Source: Zygnema circumcarinatum SAG 698-1b
Taxonomy: Eukaryota; Plantae; Zygnematophyceae
Length of the DNA: 64,000 nt
Assembly: GCA_037447605.1 (NCBI GenBank)
Contig: CM074813.1
Coordinates: forward strand, 2,356,001 to 2,420,000
Direction: 5' to 3'
Under the pieces are notes generated by a model. That model did no database searches, was not told where the DNA came from, and saw only the letters and a list, made by a program, of their open reading frames with translations. Shown here one piece after another: positions 7,269 through 61,354 of this stretch. The position numbers and the translations under genes are program-made. The first letter of the stretch is position 1, and every line of letters starts with the position of its first letter.

Positions 7269-8362
7269 GGAATCTATTATTTAAGGGTAGTGATATTTCC
7301 ACCCCTTTTTTGGATCCAAACACCCCTTCCCGGCCGGGCAGATTTCAAAAGGTATTAAAAACGGAAAATGCTTTTTCCGTTTTTTTTTCACACCATTTTG
7401 GAATCGATACCCACCTTCTTCCGTCGGCTGATTTTATTTTTGCTAACCAAGGAAAATGATACCCCGTCACCGCATTTTGAATACTGTATCCCGCCTCCCT
7501 GAATTTTTTTTTTGAGGGAAAGACATATCTGCCTGCCCGAATCCGCTCGGAGCGAAAGATCCGTCTGCCACGAGATCGTTCGCGGGTGTCCGTCCTTCAC
7601 ACGTGTGTGTCAATCGCAACTGTCGATTCCCTCACAGATCGCACCACTGCAGATTACCGTTCGATCTGCAGCCGGGCTCGATCTTAGCGAATGGAAAGCG
7701 CCCACGAGTCCCGTCAAAGCCGGATCGCACTTGCGAGTGCGCGAGTCCATCGGCGAGATCTCGTCATTGTTAGCTCCAAGCCAATCAACAGCTGCCACGT
7801 GTTACATTTTTGACGTGGAAAATTTTGATTGGTCCAAGCTCTCAATGTACGAAATTTTGGGTTCCTCAAAGTTACTACCGTACGACATTTGTACGGACAA
7901 ACTGTCGAGGCGACTTTGGCGGGATACGTGGGCTCGTGCCATTCGCTGTGACCGAGCCCGGCTGCAGATCAAATAGTGATCTGTCGTGTTGGGATTTGCG
8001 AGGGAATCGACGGCTGTGATTGACCGCACGCGTGAAAAGAAATTCAGGTAGGCGGGATATTCAAAATGGGGTGACGGGTTATCATTTTCCTTGTTTCGCA
8101 AAAATAAAATCTGCCGATGGAGGGTGGGTATCGATTCCAAAAAGGTGTGAAAAAAGCATTTTCCGTTTTTAATCCTTTTTGAAATCTGCCCGGCCGGGAA
8201 GGGGTGTTTGGATCCAAAAAAGGGGTGGAAATATCACGACCCTTATTTAAACACAATTTTTGGCTAGAACACCCCTTTTTGGTTTAAAAACCCTAAAAAT
8301 CCTGAAATCTGACCGGCGAAAAAAGATGTGTATATAGCCAAAAAGGTGTGTAAATAGATCCC
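7269..8362. mobile_element. Older short MITE interrupted by family A copy 1
   Basis: Removing 7285-8250 joins GGAATCTATTATTTAAACACAATTTTTGGCTA to an end whose reverse complement is GGGATCTATTTACACACCTTTTTGGCTA. These ends resemble those of the 49757-50707 element. No TSD is seen. Confidence 0.45.
7285..8242. mobile_element. Non-autonomous long-TIR DNA transposon (family A copy 1), 958 bp, 8-bp TSD TTATTTAA
   Basis: Termini GGGTAGTGATATTTCCACCCC...GGGGTGGAAATATCACGACCC. Imperfect TIRs are ~220 bp, with an inner inverted repeat (~7625-7700/~7940-8020). TTATTTAA lies at 7277-7284 and 8243-8250. A second copy is at 48172-49113. Confidence 0.9.
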
Positions 8363-36520: not shown

Positions 36521-39500
36521 TCACCTTAAGCTCAAATTTTGATGAAATTCGTTTATTCTCGGTGAATCAGTAGGCTCCTCCGACTCTTCCACCTTGGCAG
36601 TCCCTTCTAAAGTGAAAGTTAAGCCTTGTGACTGCTCAGATAGCAGCTTCCCACGCCTCTTTCCACCTGTACAAGCCGCTTGTGCTAATGTCTCTCCTCC
36701 ACTATCTTGCCTCAAAAAGCCGCCAGAATCATTTTCTTTTTTTCCCCATCTTTGCACTAAGTCTTCTCCCCCTCCTGCAGCCTCAGCTTTTTCTGCACTC
36801 ACTCCTCCCGCGGCGGGACCTGCTCCTCCTGACAGCCCACTTCCTGATGTCTCCGCCTCTTGCCTTGTTGCCATGCTTTCACTCCGACTGTAACCGTCTG
36901 CATGCGTACCTCGCCTATCCTTTCCGTCCGTCCCTTCTCCCCACCCATCTACGGAGGGAGCTGTTCCTGCAGATCCTCCTCTCACTCCTTCTCCAGAAGC
37001 TGCTGCAAAGGATGGTTCTGAAAGGCCTTCCCCAAAGGAAGTTCGCCCTTTCCTTCGTCTGTCAAGAGATGGCACTTCCCCTGCGCAGTATCTTTTCCAG
37101 AGCTGCCGATATGTCGTCTCTAAGTCCCGAGTGAACCGCGAGCCATCACAAAGACGTGACTTAAGCATTCGCTCGCGGATAGTGGCTCGCAAAGCTGCAA
37201 GTTTTGAGATGTCGGAGCCTAATTGCAGTGCAAGCTGTACATATTCATCCTCCGTTTGAGCTATAAGTTCACCAAGACCTGAAGGACAAAGAGTCAAAAA
37301 AAAAAAAAAATGACCACGGCTGAGTTGTTGGTCATAACGCTGGTAGTACGTGATGCATCGTTTTCACTTGCTTCCAAGTAAGGTTTTTCTAGACCTGTTC
37401 TCACCTAGCTGCGTCAGAAGTGTGACCCCAACATTGTTTGCATGCACTTCCCCTGCCATGGTCACACATGGCACCCCCATATAAAGTGACTCGCAAGTTG
37501 TTGTTGTTCCTGCATATGGAAAGGTGTCCAGACTGAACCAACCAGACAATCCACCCCCCATCCAACCCCACCATCAGAACGCTTTTGTCAAATACAATGT
37601 CACATCCAACAACTACAGCAGACATTTTGCATGTGCTCCGGATTTCCTAAGAGAAGTTACACAAACTTTGTGTATTTCTGGGCATGTGTTCCGCACCTTA
37701 TGTCCATGAGGGAATAAGCCTGCATGTGGTCGTGATTCAACAAAATGAGCGGTAGAAGGTCCACTCGCAGCGAGTTGATTCCCTCTGCTTCTAATGCAGC
37801 CATGAAGCGTTCACTGATTGACGAGCATGAGAATGGCTTGCACTTCACCACAAGTCGAGAAGTCGGCAAAGCCCGCAGGACACGCGACCAAAGGCTCACA
37901 ACACGGGGAGTAATCTGTCCCCATGCACATCCACGCAACAAAATGATACAGCTCATTAGAAAATATTGAAATGACTTCTAGGTGCAGGGACATTTCTATG
38001 TTCCACTCGTGACCGATAAGCTACATCACGTCCTTACCTTCCGCAAGGGCAACTCGATGAGAAAATACCTTATTTCAGGGATAACCAAGGGAGGAGGAGA
38101 GGGAGAATGAATGTGAGAGAAGAGCAAGATTGATAGAGAAGAGAGGAGATACAGGATGAAAGAAAGAGAACAAAGGATGCGTGGCCATGGGCTTCAAGTG
38201 TTGTCGCACCTTTGCGAGGTTGTTGAAGCTTCCAAATGTGACGTAGCCGTTAGCTTGAGATGGAGCAGGAGTGACCGGCCCAGCTTCAGGTGACGGCATA
38301 TAGCAAAGGAATGATCCCGGAAGGCGAACAAGCTCCTCCACGTGCCTGCAGACTCGAAAGTAAACACAAACGTTGATCCACGTTGGCAACAACAAACTTT
38401 CTTCCAAAGGTGTATGCAGACTCCATCGCAATCAAAGAATTCACGATTCTCCTACTTCATCCTACTGCCCATTTCTATGATTCGCGTGGCTTAACAGCAA
38501 AACTCAACTCACTTCAGCTGTCTGTCAGGAGGGTCTACAAGCGCGTCTGTGAAGCGATAGTCGATGGTGTGCAGGCCCGTTGTATTCGGGTAGCCGATCC
38601 AAGTTGCCTGCATACAGAAAGTAAAAAAATGGCAAAGAAAAGGTGCATCACAACCGTTAAAGGAACTTCCCAGGTGAAGGCCATCTTCTGAAGAAAATAC
38701 AATGGCATCAAATTATCACCTCTTTTCAGAAAAAAAAAAGAAGAAAACTTGCAGAATCGTACCTGAACGGGAGCAGGATGACAGGCCATCACTCCGAGTC
38801 GGTTATTCGCAGTGTGGCCGGTCAGCTCGACAAGAATGTCGACCTTGTCTTCCCTTACAAGATCAGCAACCTTCTTTTCATCCAGCCCGTAGATATCGCG
38901 CCACATTCCTCCCTTCTTACTAACCATATCTTTAAATCTCAAGGTTTTTCCATCAGCCTGCAGCCAAGACATGGTTCAATGCATTCATTTTCACTCCCTT
39001 TGAGCTCGGTAAGATGTTGGACAAAGTCTGTCGTGCTTACAGGTTGAAAAGGTAGTAATGATAATAAGTCTTCCGCAGCCTTAGCTTCAGGCTTTGCTGT
39101 AAGAGACTGTAGGAGGAAATAGACAGGAAGGGGAAAGCAGGAGCATCACATGGGAAGATGAGAGAGGAAGAGTACCTTCACAACTGCAGAGTAAATAGCT
39201 AGTCGAAACTCCGAGGAATTGTGGTGGGTGAGGGGAGCTTCTATGAAGTAGGAAACGGAGTGAGTGAAATAGTCAGGAGATATGTAACCGATTGTGAGTG
39301 GACGATCAGGATCTTTGATATTTTCCCAACTTGTTTGCTCTGGAAAAAGTCGACTGAACCGTCTCCCCCAATCCCTGCAAACAAAGATGAGCAGGTCAGC
39401 TGACTGATGACTATCCTGGGACCGAATCATGCTTGTGTTTGGAAACTTCAATATAGGTTATAGCCTTTACAAGCGATACATGTTGCAAAAAGAAGGCGAG

Positions 39501-42500
39501 ATTTGAAGGCCAAGTCAATAATCTCATCTCACCTGTGTGCGATGTAAAGGGAGTCATCATGCCCTTCGTGGATGTAGTTCATTGCAAGCAATCGATTCTG
39601 CACAATGTCCCAGGTTTTCCCATTATAATAAGATGTGTTACTGGTTACCTGTTTGATTTGGCCGGAAGGAAATTCTGTGAGTATATTATTAAGTCCAAAC
39701 GAGAAACTCTACACTCTTCTTTAGTGAAAGGAAAGTGCTTCCTCCTCTCCCGATAGTGTGGGTTCCTCTCCCTCCCTGTTCCCACCTGGAATGCATTTCT
39801 CGAATCTGGATCAATCCGCAAGCACTGCTCATAGGCTTCAATGGCTGCCGGGATGTTTCCGGCATCTCGATGGAGCACGCCTGAGAAAAGCAAATGGCCC
39901 ACTCCCATCCTTCTTTACTTCATTACTTCATTACTCTTTGACCCCTATGTTTATTTCTCGACTAAATTTCTTCATAAATATTTAAGTGCTTCAGAATGCA
40001 GCACCATTCCTTTGCTTTCTACTCCACTTTTCTTTATCTCAAAAGAATCGTAAGATCATCATAACGCTCAAAGAAACGAGAAAATAGGTCTGGACGAGGG
40101 AAGGAGAGGGGGTTNNNNNNNNNNGGTTATTCGCAGTGTGGCCGGTCAGCTCGACAAGAATGTCGACCTTGTCTTCCCTTACAAGATCAGCAACCTTCTT
40201 TTCATCCAGCCCGTAGATATCGCGCCACATTCCTCCCTTCTTACTAACCATATCTTTAAATCTCAAGGTTTTTCCATCAGCCTGCAGCCAAGACATGGTT
40301 CAATGCATTCATTTTCACTCCCTTTGAGCTCGGTAAGATGTTGGACAAAGTCTGTCGTGCTTACAGGTTGAAAAGGTAGTAATGATAATAAGTCTTCCGC
40401 AGCCTTAGCTTCAGGCTTTGCTGTAAGAGACTGTAGGAGGAAATAGACAGGAAGGGGAAAGCAGGAGCATCACATGGGAAGATGAGAGAGGAAGAGTACC
40501 TTCACAACTGCAGAGTAAATAGCTAGTCGAAACTCCGAGGAATTGTGGTGGGTGAGGGGAGCTTCTATGAAGTAGGAAACGGAGTGAGTGAAATAGTCAG
40601 GAGATATGTAACCGATTGTGAGTGGACGATCAGGATCTTTGATATTTTCCCAACTTGTTTGCTCTGGAAAAAGTCGACTGAACCGTCTCCCCCAATCCCT
40701 GCAAACAAAGATGAGCAGGTCAGCTGACTGATGACTATCCTGGGACCGAATCATGCTTGTGTTTGGAAACTTCAATATAGGTTATAGCCTTTACAAGCGA
40801 TACATGTTGCAAAAAGAAGGCGAGATTTGAAGGCCAAGTCAATAATCTCATCTCACCTGTGTGCGATGTAAAGGGAGTCATCATGCCCTTCGTGGATGTA
40901 GTTCATTGCAAGCAATCGATTCTGCACAATGTCCCAGGTTTTCCCATTATAATAAGATGTGTTACTGGTTACCTGTTTGATTTGGCCGGAAGGAAATTCT
41001 GTGAGTATATTATTAAGTCCAAACGAGAAACTCTACACTCTTCTTTAGTGAAAGGAAAGTGCTTCCTCCTCTCCCGATAGTGTGGGTTCCTCTCCCTCCC
41101 TGTTCCCACCTGGAATGCATTTCTCGAATCTGGATCAATCCGCAAGCACTGCTCATAGGCTTCAATGGCTGCCGGGATGTTTCCGGCATCTCGATGGAGC
41201 ACGCCTGAGAAAAGCAAATGGCCCACTCCCATCCTTCTTTACTTCATTACTTCATTACTCTTTGACCCCTATGTTTATTTCTCGACTAAATTTCTTCATA
41301 AATATTTAAGTGCTTCAGAATGCAGCACCATTCCTTTGCTTTCTACTCCACTTTTCTTTATCTCAAAAGAATCGTAAGATCATCATAACGCTCAAAGAAA
41401 CGAGAAAATAGGTCTGGACGAGGGAAGGAGAGGGGTTGAAGGGGAAGAACAGTCAGAAGGATAGAAGTCAGAGGAAAGACGGATATCGTGAGCGGTGGGA
41501 ACGAGTAACAAAGAGAAAGGGGGGGGGGGGGGGAAGGGAGTAGGGGGAAGTAGCGAAATAGGGGAACGAGGGGAACGATGGGATGAAGGGAAGGGGAGGG
41601 AGAGAGGAGGAGAAGACGCCTGAGGGAGTGAGGGGTTAGGAGGCAGGGAAAGAAGTCGAAGAGAAGGAGAGGAGAAAGAGAAACGGAAATAGAGACAAAC
41701 GGGGGAGAGAGGAATACAGGGAGGGAGGAGGATAGAGGGAGAGAAGCAAATAACTTCATGGAGGACTTTTGAGGTGTGAAGCCTACCGAGATTATTGTAT
41801 GCCTCAGCATACGTGGGGTTCGCAATAATAGCCCCTTGAATCATTCCAAGAGCAAGATCCATCTTGCCCTGAACCCCGCAATCCCAAAAAACTTAAAGAA
41901 GATTCAAATTTTCTTGCCTTACTGACTTCACAGGTGCCCAAATCCATACAAAGTCACATGACAATACGACATCAGCAGCGTCTCCGTAATGGGGAGTTGT
42001 TGTCGAACTATGAACCATTTTCATTTCTTCTCGCATTGTCAAAGTCAAATCCAGCATTTACTGACGAGTGAGAGAGAGGGAGATCAAAGGACAAAAAAAG
42101 AGATTGGTTTCGGCATTCACTTTCATCAACAGAATAGTAATGGTTAGAGACGAATGAGAGAGGTGAAGACTTTCCGTATGGAAAGTGCTAAGCCACTTGG
42201 ATGTACCTAGGCATAACTTACCTGAACAGTGTATACAACTCCAAGGTTGTTGAGAGATTGTGAAAAATTGGGCTTTATTCTCAGAGCTTTCTGCAAGAAT
42301 CCGAACCAGACTTATCATCAGACGCAAAAACCAAGCTTCAGGCATGCCTAGAGTATAAGAATGGAGATTCAAACTATAAGCCTTCTTCAAGCCTTTATAA
42401 AGTCAACTTTCTGAGTGAAAACAAAACATCCCGACGTACCTGATAGCATTCGACAGCTTTGTCGAGGTTGTCTCGATCTTTGTAAATCACTCCCAAATTG

Positions 42501-48160: not shown

Positions 48161-48171
48161 CAATTAAAGAG

Positions 48172-49113
48172 GGGTAGTGATATTTCCACCCCTTTTTTGG
48201 ATCCAAACACCCCTTCCCGGCCGGGCAGATTTCAAAAGGGATTAAAAACGGAAAATGCTTTTTTCACACCTTTTTGGAATCGATACCCACCTTCTTCCGT
48301 CGGCTGATTTTATTTTTGCTAACCAAGGAAAATGATACCCCGTCACCGCATTTTGAATACTGTATCCCGCCTTCCTGAATTTTTTTTTTGAGGGAAAGAA
48401 ATATCTGCCTGCCCGTATCCGCTCGGAGCGGAAGATCCGTCCGCCACGAGATCGTTCGCGGGTGTCCGTCCTTCACACGTCGCAGCTGTCGATTCCCTCG
48501 CAGATCGCACCACTGCAAATCACCGTTCGTTCTGCAGCCGGGCTCGATCTTAGCGAATGGAATGCGCCCACGAGTCCCGCCAAAGCCGGGCCGAGGGACA
48601 CGTGCGAGTGCGCGTGTCCGTCGGCCTGAGATCTCGTGCATTGTCAGCTTTCAGCTAATCAACATCTGCCATGTGTTACTTTTTTGACGTGGAATACGTT
48701 GATTGGGTCCAAGCTCTCAATGTACGAAATATTGGGTTCCTCAAAGTTGCGACCGTACGAAATTTGTACGGACAAACATTTGAGACGAGTTTGGCGGGAT
48801 ACGTGGGCACGTGCCATTCGCTGTGACCGAGCCCGGCTGCAGAGCAAATAGTGATCTGCCGTGTTGTGATCTGCGAAGGAATCGACGGCTGCGATTGACC
48901 GCACGCGTGAAAAAAAATTCAGGTAGGCGGGATATTCAAAATGGGTTGACGGGTTATTTCCTTGTTTCGCAAAAATAAAACCTGCCGATGGAGGGTGGGT
49001 ATCGATTCCAAAAAGGTGTGAAAAAAGCATTTTCCGTTTTTAATCCTTTTTGAAATCTGCCCGGCCGGGAAGGGGTGTTTGGATCCAAAAAAGGGGTAGA
49101 AATATCACTACCC
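48172..49113. mobile_element. Non-autonomous long-TIR DNA transposon (family A copy 2), 942 bp, 8-bp TSD TTAAAGAG
   Basis: Collinear with 7285-8242. Termini GGGTAGTGATATTTCCACCCC...GGGGTAGAAATATCACTACCC. TTAAAGAG lies at 48164-48171 and 49114-49121. Confidence 0.9.
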
Positions 49114-49162
49114 TTAAAGAGAATCTCTTCATTTCTCGTCTCTTGGCAAGTCGAGTTGTCGC

Positions 49163-49756: not shown

Positions 49757-50707
49757 GAGGTTCTATATTCACACCTTTTTTGTCTACACACAGACCTTTT
49801 TTCGCCGGGCAGGTTCTATTTTTAGAAAAACGAAAAATGCTTTTTTCACACCTTTCTTGTCTTTACGCACTCCTTTTTCCGTCGGGCAGATTTTACTCCT
49901 GATTCGTTTTTGGACAGAAAAAAATATCGGCCTGCCCGAATCCGCTCGGAGCGAAAGATCCGTCCACGAGATCGTTTGCGGGTGTGCGTCCTTCAAATGT
50001 GCAATGAATCTCCGCCGTCGATTCTTGCGCAGATCGCACAACGGCAGATCACCGTTCGATCTGCAGTGGGGCTCGGTCTCAGCTAATGGCACGTGCCCAC
50101 GTGTCCATCCAAAGCCAGATGGCACTTGCGAGAGCGCGCGTCCCCCGGCCCGAGATCTCCGCAAAAGTATGAAGCTGGACCGGCCAGCCTGCGGCGGCTC
50201 GCAATTGACAACTAACAACCGATCACCATCTGCCACGTGTTCTCATTATGAGGTGGCTAATTGTTATTGGTGCAGGCTCTCAATGTACGGTATTTCACCT
50301 TTCCTCGAAGCTGTCGCCGTCCAGCTATAGTACGGACCCACTTTGAGCCGGCTTTGTGGGCCCGTGCCATTCGCTGGGACCGAGCCCGACTGCAGATCGA
50401 ACGGTGATCTGCCGCGGTGCGATCTGTGTAGGAATCGAAGGCGGAGATTCATTGCACGTGTGAAGGACGCACACTCGCAAACGATCTCGTGGAGGACGGA
50501 TCTTTAGCTCCGAGCGGATTCGGGCAGGCCGATTTTTCTCTCCAAAAAAAAATCAGAGGTAAGAGAAAAAAGGTGTGTATCGATTCCAGAAAGGTGTGAA
50601 AAAAGCACTTTTTGTTTTTAATCCTATTAAAAAAAAAAAAACCTACCCGGCGAAAAAGGTCTGTGTGTACAGGTGTGGTGTGAAAAAAGGTGTGAATATA
50701 GAACTTC
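49757..50707. mobile_element. ~950-bp foldback element (family B) with ~345-bp inverted arms, sharing internal modules with family A
   Basis: Ends GAGGTTCTATATTCACACC / GGTGTGAATATAGAACTTC. Arms ~49757-50100 pair with ~50355-50707. It shares CTGCCCGAATCCGCTCGGAGCGAAAGATCCGTC with 7531-7565 and is absent from the paralogous region at ~61200. No clean TSD. Confidence 0.8.
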
Positions 50708-50852
50708 CCAAAATCAACCCTTGGTGTTCACACGTGCGGAAATGTGATCCAGTGCTGAACCAGACCACCCCGTGTGAACACCTTTTCTGCAATTGTCGTT
50801 GTGGCGAACGCTTCGCGTGAAGTAGACGAGGGAGAGGGAGGAAGCAGGCGCC

Positions 50853-55758
<4,906 letters not shown>

Positions 55759-56248: not shown

Positions 56249-58030
56249 CGGCACGGGGCTGTCCTCTGCCCTTCTCAGGGAGGGGAGGGGACCATGGTGG
56301 GTGGAAGTCCCGGAGTGACCGCGAGGGTCCCTCAGAACAGCGAGGCGGTCCCCCGGCCTCGCCTATAAAGGCAGTGACGAGGAAGGGGGAGGGGGGAGGC
56401 AATACTGGGAGCGGTGAAGGAGGCGAGGGGGGAGAGGGGGAGAAGGAGAGGGAAGACAAGGAGGGGAAGGGGAGGGAGGGGAGGAGGAGAGGAATAGGCC
56501 AAAAAAATCCAACTGATTATTTGTGGGTGGTTTTTTGTTTGCTTGTCATTTGGAGGATCCTTTGTCATCACACATTGTGAATTTTGAAGAGTGAGCTTGA
56601 ATCTTGAGCTTCTCTCCAGTCTTGGCTTTAGTGCTTTTCTTTATATTTTTTTGTTATCATTATGCTTAAATTAAACAGCGTGCGTTCTTGAAAGAAAAAA
56701 AAATTCAAATACTTTGTGTTACTCAAACCTCGTGTTTAGAATTGAAAAACGAATCCGTGGAAAAATGAAATCTGAATTGCCATTTCCTATGACATAAGTC
56801 GAAGGTTAACACCAACGCTTAGTAGCACATAAAAGCGTGCCGCCTCGAAGCAAACTTAGTTTGCTGATTTTTAAAGTAAAACATATACAGATTGGGCACT
56901 TTCCGTTGTACACAACAGAACAAGAGAGATAAAAGCACGGTAGATAGAAAGTCTCTTCACTCGAGCCTCTAAATTGGGACCAAGTAAGAAAAAATAATGT
57001 TTATTTTAAGGTTTGTAAGGCGTACCGGAAAACGGGCACATGGCAAGGACCCTTCCTTTGGTTGCAACTGGCCTTACATTTAATAAATTTAAATACGTGA
57101 AATTGCTTCATGAGAAGCCACCTAATACGGGCAAAAGAAATTGAATCTTATTCTCCTCCTCTCGGGCGTTAGGAAGGATGAAGAAGTTTTGAAAAATGAA
57201 ATGCGTTAACCGTGTATCCCTCTCTAAAGTAAAACTCGTGAGCTCGGCCTCGCTAAACCCCAGAGTCGATTTCCAACGTTTTGCAACAGTTGGCAAAGGC
57301 CTGCACCTCGTACAAGCCACGGAAAGAACGGATCATTCATTACCGAAAAAAAACTATACCCAAGAAGGCATACTATGAAAGTCATAAATAGTAGTAACCA
57401 TGAATTGTGTTTTAGTTCTAACATCAAATTTTGCGTGAGCGATATACACCGAACTGGCCGATTAACCAGATTCAACCCTAATCGGCGACGCGATGAAAGT
57501 AAGGAAAACGATGAGCTCATCGTCTGGGTAGCTTGAAAGTTGCAAAAAATACAAAGAAACATAGAAATAAAAGGATAGAAAAAAAGCATCACCTTCCCCT
57601 CCAGATAGTTCATGAGCACGCGGCCCACCCCCCCCCGAACGCTCACTCGCCCTCGCCACGAGCTCGACATAGACATATGTCGTCATGTCGTCATATGTCG
57701 TCATATGTCGTCGACATAGGGCCGCTTCAAGGTGAAGAGGAGCCACGTCATCTGCCAGCCTGCCACCGCCACATACTCACCACGTGTCGCATCCTCGTTG
57801 GTCGAATACACCAGCAGCGGGTTTGTTTACCGAATGTTGAGGGTTTGAATCCCAATCCCTTCACTCAAAGCACGCCACTTACTTGTTACTTTGGACCAAC
57901 ATGATGCCACGTGTCCTCACACGACGCAGCTTAAAGTCTTTTCTTGGTACAAAATTTGGACCAACATTCAGAATGGTCGGCTGCCTACCTTCTCGTTAGG
58001 GCTTGCAGCAAGAGAAGAGAGTCAATCGTC

Positions 58031-58396
58031 ATTGACAGTCGATCTGTAAGAAAAGTTTCTCGATGTTGAAGTTCAACTTCGCAAAAAAATTGTAGTAAAG
58101 AATGCCCATCTTACTAAGGTGCACGATTGCTAAGGCACAACTGACTGACTTACTTTATAATATCCACCTTATTGCCACAAAGGACAATAGGGATCACGAA
58201 GTCACACACACTGCACATAACAACGTGATCCTTATTGTCCTGTGTGGCAACAAAGTGGATACTATAAAATCAATCAATCAATCGCGCCTTAGCAAGATAA
58301 TTGTGCACCTTAACAAAATGAGCATTCTTTACTACAATTTTTTTGCGAAATCAAACTTCAACATCGAAACACCATTCTTACAAATCGTCTGTCAAC
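58031..58396 (-). ncRNA. Candidate hairpin-RNA/MIRNA-like locus formed by inverted duplication of a Ran GTPase gene fragment
   Basis: Arms 58031-58198 and 58224-58396 are reverse complements (141 of 168 identical, one 5-nt indel, 25-nt loop). Both arms translate to degenerate Ran G4-G5 sequence (IPIVLCGNKVD; YYNFFAKSNFNIETPFL). Of 22 transitions, 20 are G:U pairs on the minus strand. TATAAAA lies on the minus strand at 58427-58421. Confidence 0.65.
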
Positions 58397-59273
58397 GGCG
58401 GTTGGTTCTCTCCTCTCTCCTTTTATACTCTCGCTCTCGCAAGCTCACAAAAGAGAGCCATAGAGTCCTCAGGCGTGCCTTGCAGATACGGTGGAGGGGG
58501 GGGGGAGGAGGTCAAGAGAGGGAGAGAGTTGCAGGGAGCAATAAGGAGGGAGAAGGAACGAGTGCAAGAGACACGAGAAGAGAGAGAAGAGCCGGGAGAG
58601 TAGGGGGAGAGGACGCGCGAGAGAAGGAGAGATTGTAACAGGGTTTTATGTGTGCCAATTTATAATCGCGATAATTGCGTACATGCTCCACCGGCCATAC
58701 AATAACGATTGCATCAGCTACACACTTTCCCACCTATCTGGTTTTGATTCAACAAACCGCCATAAAATGAAAGAAAACCGAATCAAACTCCATAGAACCC
58801 TAGTAGTCAAGGCTCAGGTTTTTGTGGAACAAGTTGAGAATGTACCTGGATGACCCCATGGCCCACATTCAGAATGTGAGGCTGGCCCCCTCCTCATCGC
58901 GGAGGGCATCCTCGGAGGGCATCCACGTCGCCCTAAAGGGCCATGACCGTACGAGTCAACGGCAGACACGAAAGAATTGAAGTGGATGGCAAGACATTCA
59001 AATGCAGGACAAGTTGAGGAGATACTAAGGAGTATTGCATGGAGGGACAAAGAGGGAGAGGGAGTGAGGGAGAGGGGCAGAGAGAGAGAGAGGGAGTGGG
59101 AGAGAGAGAACCAAGGAAGGCGAAGTGGAAAGAGAAGGTGAAGTGTGCTCACCTGTAGCACTTTCGTTGGCCCAAAAGGAGACCTCGCCTCGGCCATGTC
59201 CGTGGCCCAGTCGAGGCTCGCCACGTCAGCACTGCATTGCGCTACAATCCGTTTCAATTTCAATTTCAATTTC

Positions 59274-59614
59274 TCACAAACTTTATCAATTGTAGGGACT
59301 GAAGATGACTTGCATAATTTCATAGTTGCATCAAAAAGGCAGTTTCGGAAAGGCTCGGGAAATAGTACGGACACTCAAAACAAGACAAGAATGGGGCATA
59401 CCTGAAATATTTTTCGCGGATAATGCTCCCCTCGCCCTTTCCCCCAAAGAGGTACACCTGTGTGCCGAGTGAAGGAGTGGTAGCCGCGCATGCGAGGGAT
59501 GTCTCCCTGCGGATGTAAAGTTTCCCACACAAGGGTATCTGCACCTCCACAACCATTTCCAAGGAGAGTCACATCCAAAATGTGTGCGTGTGTGTGTGTG
59601 TGAGAGAGAGAGAG

Positions 59615-59680
<66 letters not shown>

Positions 59681-61069
59681 GAGCGAGAGAGAGGGGGGTA
59701 AAGAGAGAGAGCCTCAACATTTACCCATGTCACTCTAATTTCAGTCTTTCCACTTTATTTCTAGAAAATCTCTTTCTACAGTACACTCCCTGCCTTAGCT
59801 TGCCTTCGTCCTACCACCCTCTCCCGCCAGTTCCACCTCTCCCTCGCGTCCCTCCCCTCCTCATTACTCACCCGTGTGCAGAACCATGTGGTCTCCCAGC
59901 CATTCCATGCGTTCCCCTCCAAAACCGTCGAAAATGAGAATGGAGTCCGAGTGAAGGGGATGCACAACGGCTGCATGCGTCCCCCTCAGCTGCCCTCCAT
60001 GGCCAGAGGTAGTGGGATGGCTCCACTGCATTCGCCCACATTCATTCACATCACTAAATTCGATGATTAACTTATCAATTGACGAATTATTTGATTGATT
60101 GATCAACTAGCTATTAACTGATTGATCTCTTCCTAAAGGGATTATCGAATAAAGAGTCAAAACAGTGCTAGAGCATGCGCCTGCATTCACATCACACGCA
60201 AAGTCTCAGATCCAACCTCACCCTCCTCACTCCATTATTTAGTGCATGAGATAAAGTAAGCCTCCCTTGCCCACTCCCTACTTGGCTTCTACCCTCCTTT
60301 ATTCGACTGAAACAACAGCAAATTCAGAGATTCTTTAACCTTCCGTACCGTCAAAGTGTCCGTGTTGAGCACGTGCAGATCGCCCTGCATGTTGTCGTGG
60401 TCGCTCCCTCCAATGAGCCAAATGCAGTTCTCTCCGATGAGAGTGGCCGAGGCGTACGCGCGAGGGGAGAAGGGCGCGCAGCCCTCCACAAGGTCCCACT
60501 GCTCCGACTCGCAGTCGAAGGCCCACACATCGTTCAAAAACTTGTCGCCGTCGCGGCCGCCCATCACGAAAATTTTAGTTTTGACCAAAGCGGCGGCGTG
60601 ACCGGAGCGAGGTTTGAACTCGGGAGGGACTGCGGCCCGCAGCAAGAGCCTTCACTCAGACAGTGAGCGGAAGAAGACATTTTCTTCGTTGCAGAAAGAT
60701 AAGATTCACAGGGTTTGTGATTTAAAGAATGGAGCGTTTATTTTACAAAGAGTTAAATCCTTTAAAAAAGGTTAAAAATTTAAGAAATAAAAATATTTGC
60801 ATTTTCAAAGGGAAAGCCTCCCAAAACCTCTTGAACTGCAAAATTAAAACAAAATTGAAAGAAATAAACCTTACAGAATGCCTGGTTCAACATAATATCA
60901 TCATCATTCGTTGTTAACGAGAAAAAATAAAGAAAGAACACAGAAAGAGAGGTACACCCAAAAAAAATATGTAGAAATTTAGGCAGACCTTAAAACGAAA
61001 AAGGCCACTTCTCTTACCCGGCATGGCCTCCCAATGGGCGCGCCACGTGGCACCTTCTGCGAGCCCCAT
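59274..61069 (-). pseudogene. Inverted partial copy (exons 1-4) of the kelch/coiled-coil gene, frameshifted and truncated
   Basis: Reverse-complement homology to 50853-52919. Exon 2 looks identical. Exon 3 has GG->DG in a kelch motif. Exon 4 has a 5-nt deletion (ccttcactccgctcggcac -> ccttcactcggcac) that shifts the frame. Homology ends inside intron 4. Confidence 0.85.
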
Positions 61070-61354
61070 GGCGCCTGCTTCCTCCCTCTCCCTCGTCCTC
61101 CACGCCAAGCGTTCGCCACAACGACAATTGCAGAAAAGGTGTTCACACGGGCGGTTTGGTTCAGAACTGGATCACTTTCCCGTATGTGTGAACACCAAGG
61201 GTGTTTTTGTTTTTTGGCGTCGTTGGAATGCACTAAAAGACAAAACGTTTATCGTACCGTACACCTTGGGTGACTCTCCCGTTGACTTCAGTACAAACAT
61301 GTTTGGCACGGACAGCTCGGTTGGCGACAACTCGATATTCCAGTCAGCGCTCGC

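Follow-up and report, generated by a model that had tools for sequence, protein, structure and literature searches.

Gene-derived inverted duplication is the textbook route to new plant microRNA (miRNA) genes, and the early stages of such loci are rarely caught. The young plant MIRNA genes MIR161 and MIR163 were born, as Allen et al. are said to have reported in 2004, by inverted duplication of their target genes. These early stages are essentially undescribed in streptophyte algae, to which land plants are more closely related than to any other algae, and knowledge of small RNAs in these organisms has been called 'almost non-existent' (PMC7994812). Here we describe an inverted repeat derived from a Ran-like gene in Zygnema circumcarinatum SAG 698-1b, located within a 64-kb window of CM074813.1 (the window being the whole stretch of DNA analyzed, to which all positions refer). 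The locus provides a concrete case of this kind, namely a single-copy fold-back with a known parent family and a host transcript of known strand. The two arms differ almost exclusively by changes that are read as G:U pairs in the transcribed strand only, a signature indicative of one of two causes, selection on an RNA hairpin or an as yet undescribed mutational process that is strand-specific. With about even confidence, we interpret the locus as a candidate hairpin RNA (hpRNA) locus at a proto-miRNA stage, in which fast C-to-T decay of the repeat would be filtered by the need for RNA pairing.

Like MIR161 and MIR163, the Zygnema locus is a gene-derived inverted duplication with a short loop and arms that resemble a parent family, and is apparently transcribed from one strand. 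Unlike these genes, it belongs to a streptophyte alga, lies within a chimeric pseudogene transcript, is known from sequence and long RNA, and possesses a stem whose length and perfection go far beyond those of an annotated MIRNA fold-back. In maize, Mu killer is a gene-derived inverted repeat that is transcribed from a foreign upstream promoter. The PAI1-PAI4 locus of Arabidopsis WS is likewise an endogenous gene-derived inverted repeat with a foreign upstream promoter (cited in PMC9263138). The Zygnema repeat is similar to both in being an inverted duplicate of a gene piece that appears to be read through from a captured neighboring promoter, the predicted product being a long hairpin RNA that could act on homologs at unlinked loci. 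It differs from them in that their repeats are near-perfect and heavily methylated and their trans-silencing has been demonstrated, whereas the Zygnema arms are 16% diverged, with nearly all of this divergence being of the wobble type. Drosophila hpRNA loci yield endogenous small interfering RNAs (siRNAs) directed against the parental genes. These loci share with the Zygnema repeat a long fold-back that originates from a protein-coding gene, what appears to be single-strand transcription, and a young, lineage-specific character, but they belong to another kingdom with other Dicer and Argonaute machinery, and it is the Drosophila loci that come with small-RNA and target evidence.

The wobble pattern itself has a counterpart in engineered G:U hpRNA transgenes (Zhong et al. 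2022, PMC9263138), in which, as in Zygnema, C-to-T changes in the sense strand break the DNA repeat and keep the RNA stem. Engineered hairpins with 18-26% G:U pairs, comparable to the 12% in the Zygnema stem, are potent in plants and escape repeat-triggered self-silencing and self-methylation (PMC9263138); therefore, such a stem can work. The constructs differ from the natural locus in that every cytosine of the sense arm is changed, by design and in one arm only, whereas in Zygnema approximately 29% of the cytosines of the RNA-sense strand have been changed, in both arms and by evolution. Any benefit in Zygnema is conjectural. This likeness suggests that the Zygnema stem is functionally plausible and that an advantage of the wobble changes is possible. 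With regard to origin, template switching in replication creates hairpins in one step, mostly tens of bases in size (PMC10710096). The Zygnema repeat shows the same short loop, and its inverted copy sets in exactly at the point where the match to the parent stops being collinear (58223/58224), but the event copied approximately 200 nucleotides (nt). The features that are new in the present analysis are the single-copy state of the arms, their collinearity with a paralog, the chimeric host transcript, the RNA that runs across a putative TATA box, and the predominance of C-to-U changes.

Architecture and wobble bias of the repeat

Global alignment shows that the left arm (58005-58198) and the right arm (58224-58425) form one inverted repeat with a 25-nt loop (58199-58223); a repeat search of the window recovered it as two segments, each 83% complementary (58011-58128 with 58299-58416, and 58127-58198 with 58224-58295). 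A previous reading of the locus made from the sequence alone (hereafter, the sequence-only reading) described inverted copies at 58031-58198 and 58224-58396 with 168 aligned positions, 27 substitutions, one 5-nt gap and a 25-nt loop. Computed alignment of this core reproduces all these values, along with the count of 161 of the 168 positions paired in the minus-strand RNA (the plus strand pairs at 143), and corrects the longest perfect Watson-Crick run from 26 to 28 bp (58078-58105, pairing with 58322-58349). The folding that this reading had proposed turned out to be far stronger for the minus strand than for the plus strand, at -268.6 compared to -208.9 kcal/mol over 421 nt (z = -31 for the minus strand) and -242.9 compared to -182.5 kcal/mol for the 366-nt core. 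The two long arms, set apart by a short spacer, fold together within a single RNA strand, as in hpRNA loci; as RNA, the repeat would form a near-perfect stem of approximately 190 bp, within a fold-back of 366 nt (core) to 421 nt. In the minus-strand RNA hairpin, the right arm, which is sense on the plus strand, provides the antisense 5' arm, and the left arm, which carries the Ran-like exon in sense orientation on the minus strand, provides the 3' arm.

The core stem-loop (58031-58396) contains, in its minus-strand form, 20 G:U pairs, two A.C mismatches, five transversion mismatches and an unpaired 5-nt bulge (58296-58300). In other words, 20 substitutions are read as G:U on the minus strand, only two on the plus strand, and the remaining five are transversions. 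This bias, which had been noticed in a hand alignment, survives computed realignment (two-sided binomial p = 1.2e-4), with the counts unchanged under five alignment scorings. The short distal extension of the repeat (58005-58030 with 58397-58425) lacks the bias, as originally claimed: among its six mismatches, one is a G:U pair on the minus strand and four are G:U pairs on the plus strand, which is significantly different from the core (Fisher p = 0.004). The homology of this extension is real, because five of the six mismatches are transitions.

Eight other pairs of inverted-repeat arms in the window served for comparison. Pooled, they show 39 minus-strand and 54 plus-strand wobbles and a transition to transversion ratio of 93:98, so that the Ran-like hairpin stands apart both in orientation (Fisher p = 3e-5) and in the excess of transitions (22:5, p = 0.0016). 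These unbiased pairs include the adjoining 2.2-kb inverted repeat of a kelch gene, with arms that are 96% identical. Within the window, the wobble bias is specific to the Ran-like repeat.

The direction of the changes was assessed using, as the outgroup, 30 unmatched letters of a paralog contig that adjoin position 58153 and were aligned by hand, supplemented by codon arguments. By this outgroup, the sites at 58139 (left arm) and 58281 (right arm) are minus-strand C-to-T changes, 58285 (right arm) is a minus-strand A-to-G change, 58302 (right arm) is a plus-strand C-to-T change and one of the two exceptions to the bias, and the 5-nt gap arose by loss of these bases from the left arm. Two further left-arm sites are polarized as minus-strand C-to-T changes by the residues found in Ran (Ser to Leu and Pro to Leu). 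Furthermore, the codons AAA, CAA and GAA of the right arm correspond to AAG, CAG and GAG in the left arm, and the canonical Ran of this alga uses AAG and CAG, which points to G-to-A changes in the right arm, equivalent to C-to-T on the minus strand. On this polarization, approximately 20 of 70 minus-strand cytosines (about 29%) have been changed compared to two of 52 on the plus strand, independently of the context (CG 4/16, CHG 3/8, CHH 13/49). The suggestion that A-to-G and C-to-U changes both contribute holds for the latter, in that most of the polarizable wobble sites look like C-to-U, and shrinks to one or two sites for the former.

Ran-like origin and the chimeric host transcript

Both arms translate to a Ran-like G4-G5 sequence, with the Ran-type G4 (NKxD) and G5 (SAK) region present in the arm peptide, and the left arm is interrupted by a stop codon and by a frameshift that results from the 5-nt deletion. 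When compared to solved structures, the right-arm peptide produced a best match with E = 9e-8 over Ran residues ~107-156, and the top 45 of 47 matches were Ran or its yeast ortholog Gsp1. Translation and structure matches are thus in accord with the original description of the arms as decayed Ran G4-G5 sequence. Only about 60 codons of Ran are present, there is no intact full-length frame, and the Pfam Ras profile scores 18.7 bits against a cut-off of 21.6. A search with the 60-amino-acid arm peptide among 1.84 billion protein representatives yielded 58 matches, all of them at the level of canonical Ran (27-53% identity), and no closer parent protein. Exact look-up of two open reading frames (ORFs) that cover the hairpin showed that they are absent from the protein collection; a word-indexed protein search with the right-arm region of a 178-amino-acid ORF returned one candidate and scored none, and is uninformative given that it also missed canonical Ran.

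Whole-genome and RNA contigs were placed on the locus at 80% likeness, and the comparison draws on 40 of the 145 places where contigs and locus differ. The mRNA of canonical Ran (depth ~2600) touches the locus only at 58163-58194, which is the NKVD stretch; the unmatched ends of its contig (...HRDLCRVCEN and VKNRQVKAKQ...) are those of a plant-type Ran, in agreement with a streptophyte alga. Another Ran-like gene, a paralog with weak expression (RNA depth 4.4), matches the segment 58153-58206 with five differences. This is a divergent member of the family, of the kind that the sequence-only reading had sought as the parent or target of the hairpin, and it could be either. The left arm and the loop together are a copy of genomic DNA from a Ran-like gene, comprising the end of an intron and an exon, because the DNA contig of the paralog matches up to exactly 58224, the start of the right arm, and its RNA contig matches only to 58206. 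The DNA and RNA contigs of the canonical Ran gene diverge at the same intron end, and the loop contains the shared end ...TTATGTGCAG: it includes the last bases of the parental Ran-like intron, with the acceptor AG at 58212-58211, followed by the start of the exon. The right arm is a copy-back that starts at 58224, with the geometry of a fold-back or template-switch event.

Transcription was examined using runs X11 and X18, which were counted as RNA because they hold spliced contigs; all contigs used match the locus exactly. These RNA contigs cover 56928-57299 joined to 57592-57871, 57872-58112, 58283-58433, and 58401-58843 joined to 59151, with a further joint, 59241 to 59402, within a truncated kelch gene copy. 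The three introns (59401-59242, 59152-58846 and 57592-57301) are all of the GT..AG type on the minus strand; hence the strand of the host RNA is the minus strand, a conclusion that is independent of the wobble data and coincides with the strand that the wobble bias predicts. The contigs, which themselves carry no direction, extend up to 58112 on the lower side and down to 58283 on the upper side, and none spans 58113-58282, so that the postulated minus-strand transcription, as judged from the exact-match contigs next to the GT-AG introns, extends to both shoulders of the hairpin. No long reading frame was found in the spliced host sequence. The hairpin thus appears to sit in a chimeric, non-coding, spliced minus-strand transcript that starts in the truncated kelch copy; it had been placed downstream of, and on the same strand as, a kelch pseudogene, to which it is now seen to be spliced as well.

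Within this transcript, the segment that contains the hairpin (57593-58845, minus strand) is either one long exon or a stretch that has been retained, and it is bounded by GT-AG introns with joints from 58843 to 59151 and from 57299 to 57592. The upstream exon (59153-59241, minus strand) is spliced to the exon of the kelch copy that ends at 59402. The promoter and the first exons probably come from the truncated kelch copy (59275-61209, minus strand), in which the 5' part of the gene recurs in inverted orientation (96% identical to 50709-52919). Between this copy and the hairpin lies a probable uroporphyrinogen decarboxylase fragment (58430-59261, minus strand) that comprises 3' exons and introns with ~92% identity to a highly expressed paralog and begins 5 nt beyond the repeat; the two matches to this family (Pfam URO-D, E = 0.0076; PDB 1j93, E = 0.0097) are both weak but concur as to family and position. 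Another highly expressed gene contributed a 3' fragment (56537-57812, minus strand; ~90% identical to its paralog), which makes up the 3' exons of the transcript. Altogether, the region 56537-59261 contains fragments of at least three unrelated genes, all in the same orientation and with introns kept, as expected of filler DNA at a repaired break or of gene capture.

Additional features of this neighborhood are worth recording. The kelch copies at 50709-52919 and 59275-61209 constitute a 2.2-kb inverted segmental duplication (96% identity) that covers the promoter-proximal region of a kelch-repeat/coiled-coil gene. The copy on the plus strand runs on as an intact gene to ~55758, and the minus-strand copy is truncated and drives the chimeric transcript. 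Long (GA)n/(CT)n microsatellites in the kelch intron (52217-52581) and in the inverted copy (59602-59711) differ greatly in length. Dispersed high-copy repeats occur within the chimeric transcript, in its 3' exon and in one of its introns, at 56602-56703 and 57316-57519, where the DNA contig depth is 60-300 times that of single-copy sequence.

Possible selection on the hairpin and alternative explanations

Under the interpretation of the locus as an hpRNA gene in the making, part of a divergent Ran-like paralog, spanning the end of an intron and an exon, would have been copied back on itself by fold-back or template-switch synthesis, within a patch of gene fragments in the same orientation that is transcribed on the minus strand from the truncated kelch copy. 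In the host RNA, the arms would pair as a near-perfect stem of ~190 bp with the 25-nt loop, a natural substrate for a Dicer-like enzyme, with hairpin-derived siRNAs as the most likely product. The entire repeat would gain transitions, mainly C-to-T, faster than the neighboring duplicated DNA, which fits the dense methylation that inverted repeats draw in plants (PMC9263138), and the main stem would retain only those changes that are read as G:U in the transcribed strand, such that the RNA pairing is kept as the DNA repeat decays. Given that the surviving changes keep the minus-strand RNA paired, selection on the RNA hairpin seems to be implied, which would be plausible in a large algal population. 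The likely target would be the Ran-like paralog and possibly also the conserved G4 stretch of canonical Ran. This selection model accounts for the distal transitions of either polarity and for the fact that the favored strand is the transcribed one, and it invokes known processes only.

Several observations weigh against this interpretation. It requires effective selection against single mismatches, although selection per single mismatch over 168 bp must be weak, and tandem G:U pairs are not avoided in the stem. If the repeat is as old as the ~8%-diverged decarboxylase fragment, the numbers of transversions (5) and plus-strand wobbles (2) are close to what neutrality predicts, and an excess is seen for the minus-strand wobbles alone (20 compared to ~3); therefore, purifying selection alone cannot produce the pattern. 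The depth of long RNA over the stem is 0-3.3, compared to 8.6-11.7 over the flanking exons and ~4-5 over introns. The hairpin may be present only in the primary transcript, and the low depth could reflect such restriction, dicing, or poor copying of structured RNA. The closest proteins are at most 53% identical to the arm peptide (plant Ran, 50-53%), and the polarization of the changes is based on an outgroup of about 30 nt and on codon arguments. Finally, the hairpin was picked among many candidates, yet the p value of 1.2e-4 survives correction for approximately 300.

The principal alternative, which we consider possible although on balance unlikely, is that the repeat is a neutral scar of break repair that is transcribed by chance, and that the one-strand excess of C-to-T changes comes from a process tied to the repeat rather than from selection. 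Candidate processes are strand-biased cytosine methylation guided by one-strand hairpin siRNAs and followed by deamination, and, where hairpins extrude from a single DNA strand, a repair process that favors G.T over A.C mismatches. The repeat would then be as young as its neighbors (~8%), and a hairpin-limited one-strand C-to-T process would have added ~17 changes. Such a process would account for the preponderance of minus-strand C-to-T changes in both arms, the indifference of the conversion to context, and the near-neutral level of all other classes of change. To our knowledge, however, no mechanism of hairpin-limited, one-strand C-to-T change has been described in plants or algae. Moreover, the distal 25 nt of the same repeat, with the opposite polarity of 4 to 1, would have to be exempted, the nearby kelch inverted repeat and the flanks of the same transcription unit are unbiased, and the siRNAs of a perfect repeat match both strands, so that methylation should begin symmetrically. 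Whether selection or mutation bias shaped the stem, a minus-strand hairpin RNA is likely to be the link.

Three more general mutational processes were rejected. The fragments that flank the hairpin in the same transcript diverged symmetrically from their paralogs (A>G 11 compared to T>C 12, G>A 13 compared to C>T 8); therefore, a transcription-linked, region-wide mutation bias does not explain the hairpin pattern. Repeat-induced point mutation of the fungal type is unlikely given a canonical Ran of the plant type, the lack of a CpA preference and the untouched state of the larger kelch repeat. Decay of methylated CpG alone is at odds with the equal conversion in CG, CHG and CHH contexts and with the many CpGs that remain.

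A further variant, which we regard as improbable, is that the wobble-only divergence is itself adaptive or self-reinforcing, which would make the locus a natural counterpart of the engineered G:U hairpins. The changes could be favored by selection or made by strand-biased, siRNA-guided methylation followed by deamination. If so, C-to-T changes on the transcribed-sense strand of both arms would dismantle the DNA repeat and allow escape from methylation, self-silencing and instability, and the RNA hairpin with its siRNA output would persist despite the decay of the repeat.

The sequence-only reading had additionally portrayed the locus as a MIRNA or hpRNA gene with its own promoter, in which a TATA-driven start of RNA polymerase II near 58397 would yield a precursor cut into one dominant miRNA/miRNA* duplex. 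An independent MIRNA gene of this type is very unlikely, although the candidacy as an hpRNA or proto-miRNA locus is retained. The TATA-type motif TATAAAAG is indeed present on the minus strand at 58427-58420, in the distal end of the right arm, with the base of the biased stem approximately 25-30 nt downstream, and is rare in the window (two occurrences on the minus strand, none on the plus strand). The exact-match RNA contigs 58401-58843 and 58283-58433 cross both the motif and the predicted start, and the RNA depth does not rise downstream of 58397; an own promoter is therefore unnecessary. A similar fate befell the splice donor suggested near 57989: the sequence AAG/GTAGGC exists on the minus strand at 57990/57989, but the contig 57872-58112 reads across it. 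With respect to the hairpin itself, the 28-bp perfect run could house a duplex, but a run of this length is expected by chance in approximately one such repeat in five by a rough hand estimate, and the stem, near-perfect over ~190 bp, is like those of siRNA hairpins. The plant miRNA criteria of Axtell and Meyers from 2018 reportedly call for a fold-back of at most about 300 nt that is free of a long perfect stem of double-stranded RNA, whereas this fold-back spans 366-421 nt with 161 of 168 positions paired. Comparison to Rfam retrieved animal miRNA models only, at 16-25 bits compared to gathering thresholds of 52-100 (best, 24.9 compared to 88), which is what any hairpin would give. A literature text search with 14-mers from the perfect run, spelled in both the DNA and the RNA alphabet, and a metagenome scan with its 27-nt core produced no matches.

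The remaining possibility, that the repeat is a mobile element, either a miniature inverted-repeat transposable element (MITE) or a gene-carrying transposon with a Ran fragment in its terminal inverted repeats, is extremely improbable: the mosaic of gene fragments in the same orientation does recall gene capture by Helitrons or Pack-type elements, but the arms are gene-derived, with the left arm and loop collinear with the intron and exon of the paralog, and the search for dispersed copies with target-site duplications proposed in the sequence-only reading found the DNA depth of the whole-genome contigs over the arms at the single-copy level (107-117 compared to a baseline of 117-124), no other contig at least 80% alike on 58030-58131 or 58234-58335, no further arm copy elsewhere in the window, and no direct repeat at the flanks of the repeat ends (58005 and 58425), which excludes a MITE.

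Elsewhere in the window, a family of repeats with terminal inverted repeats of its own (7280-8250, 48164-49118 and 49898-50552; two of the copies are 91% identical over 970 nt) is probably a transposon. The segments 38801-40111 and 40125-41435 form a tandem duplicate of 1311 nt with 100% identity and a 13-nt spacer, which is either very recent or an assembly artefact.

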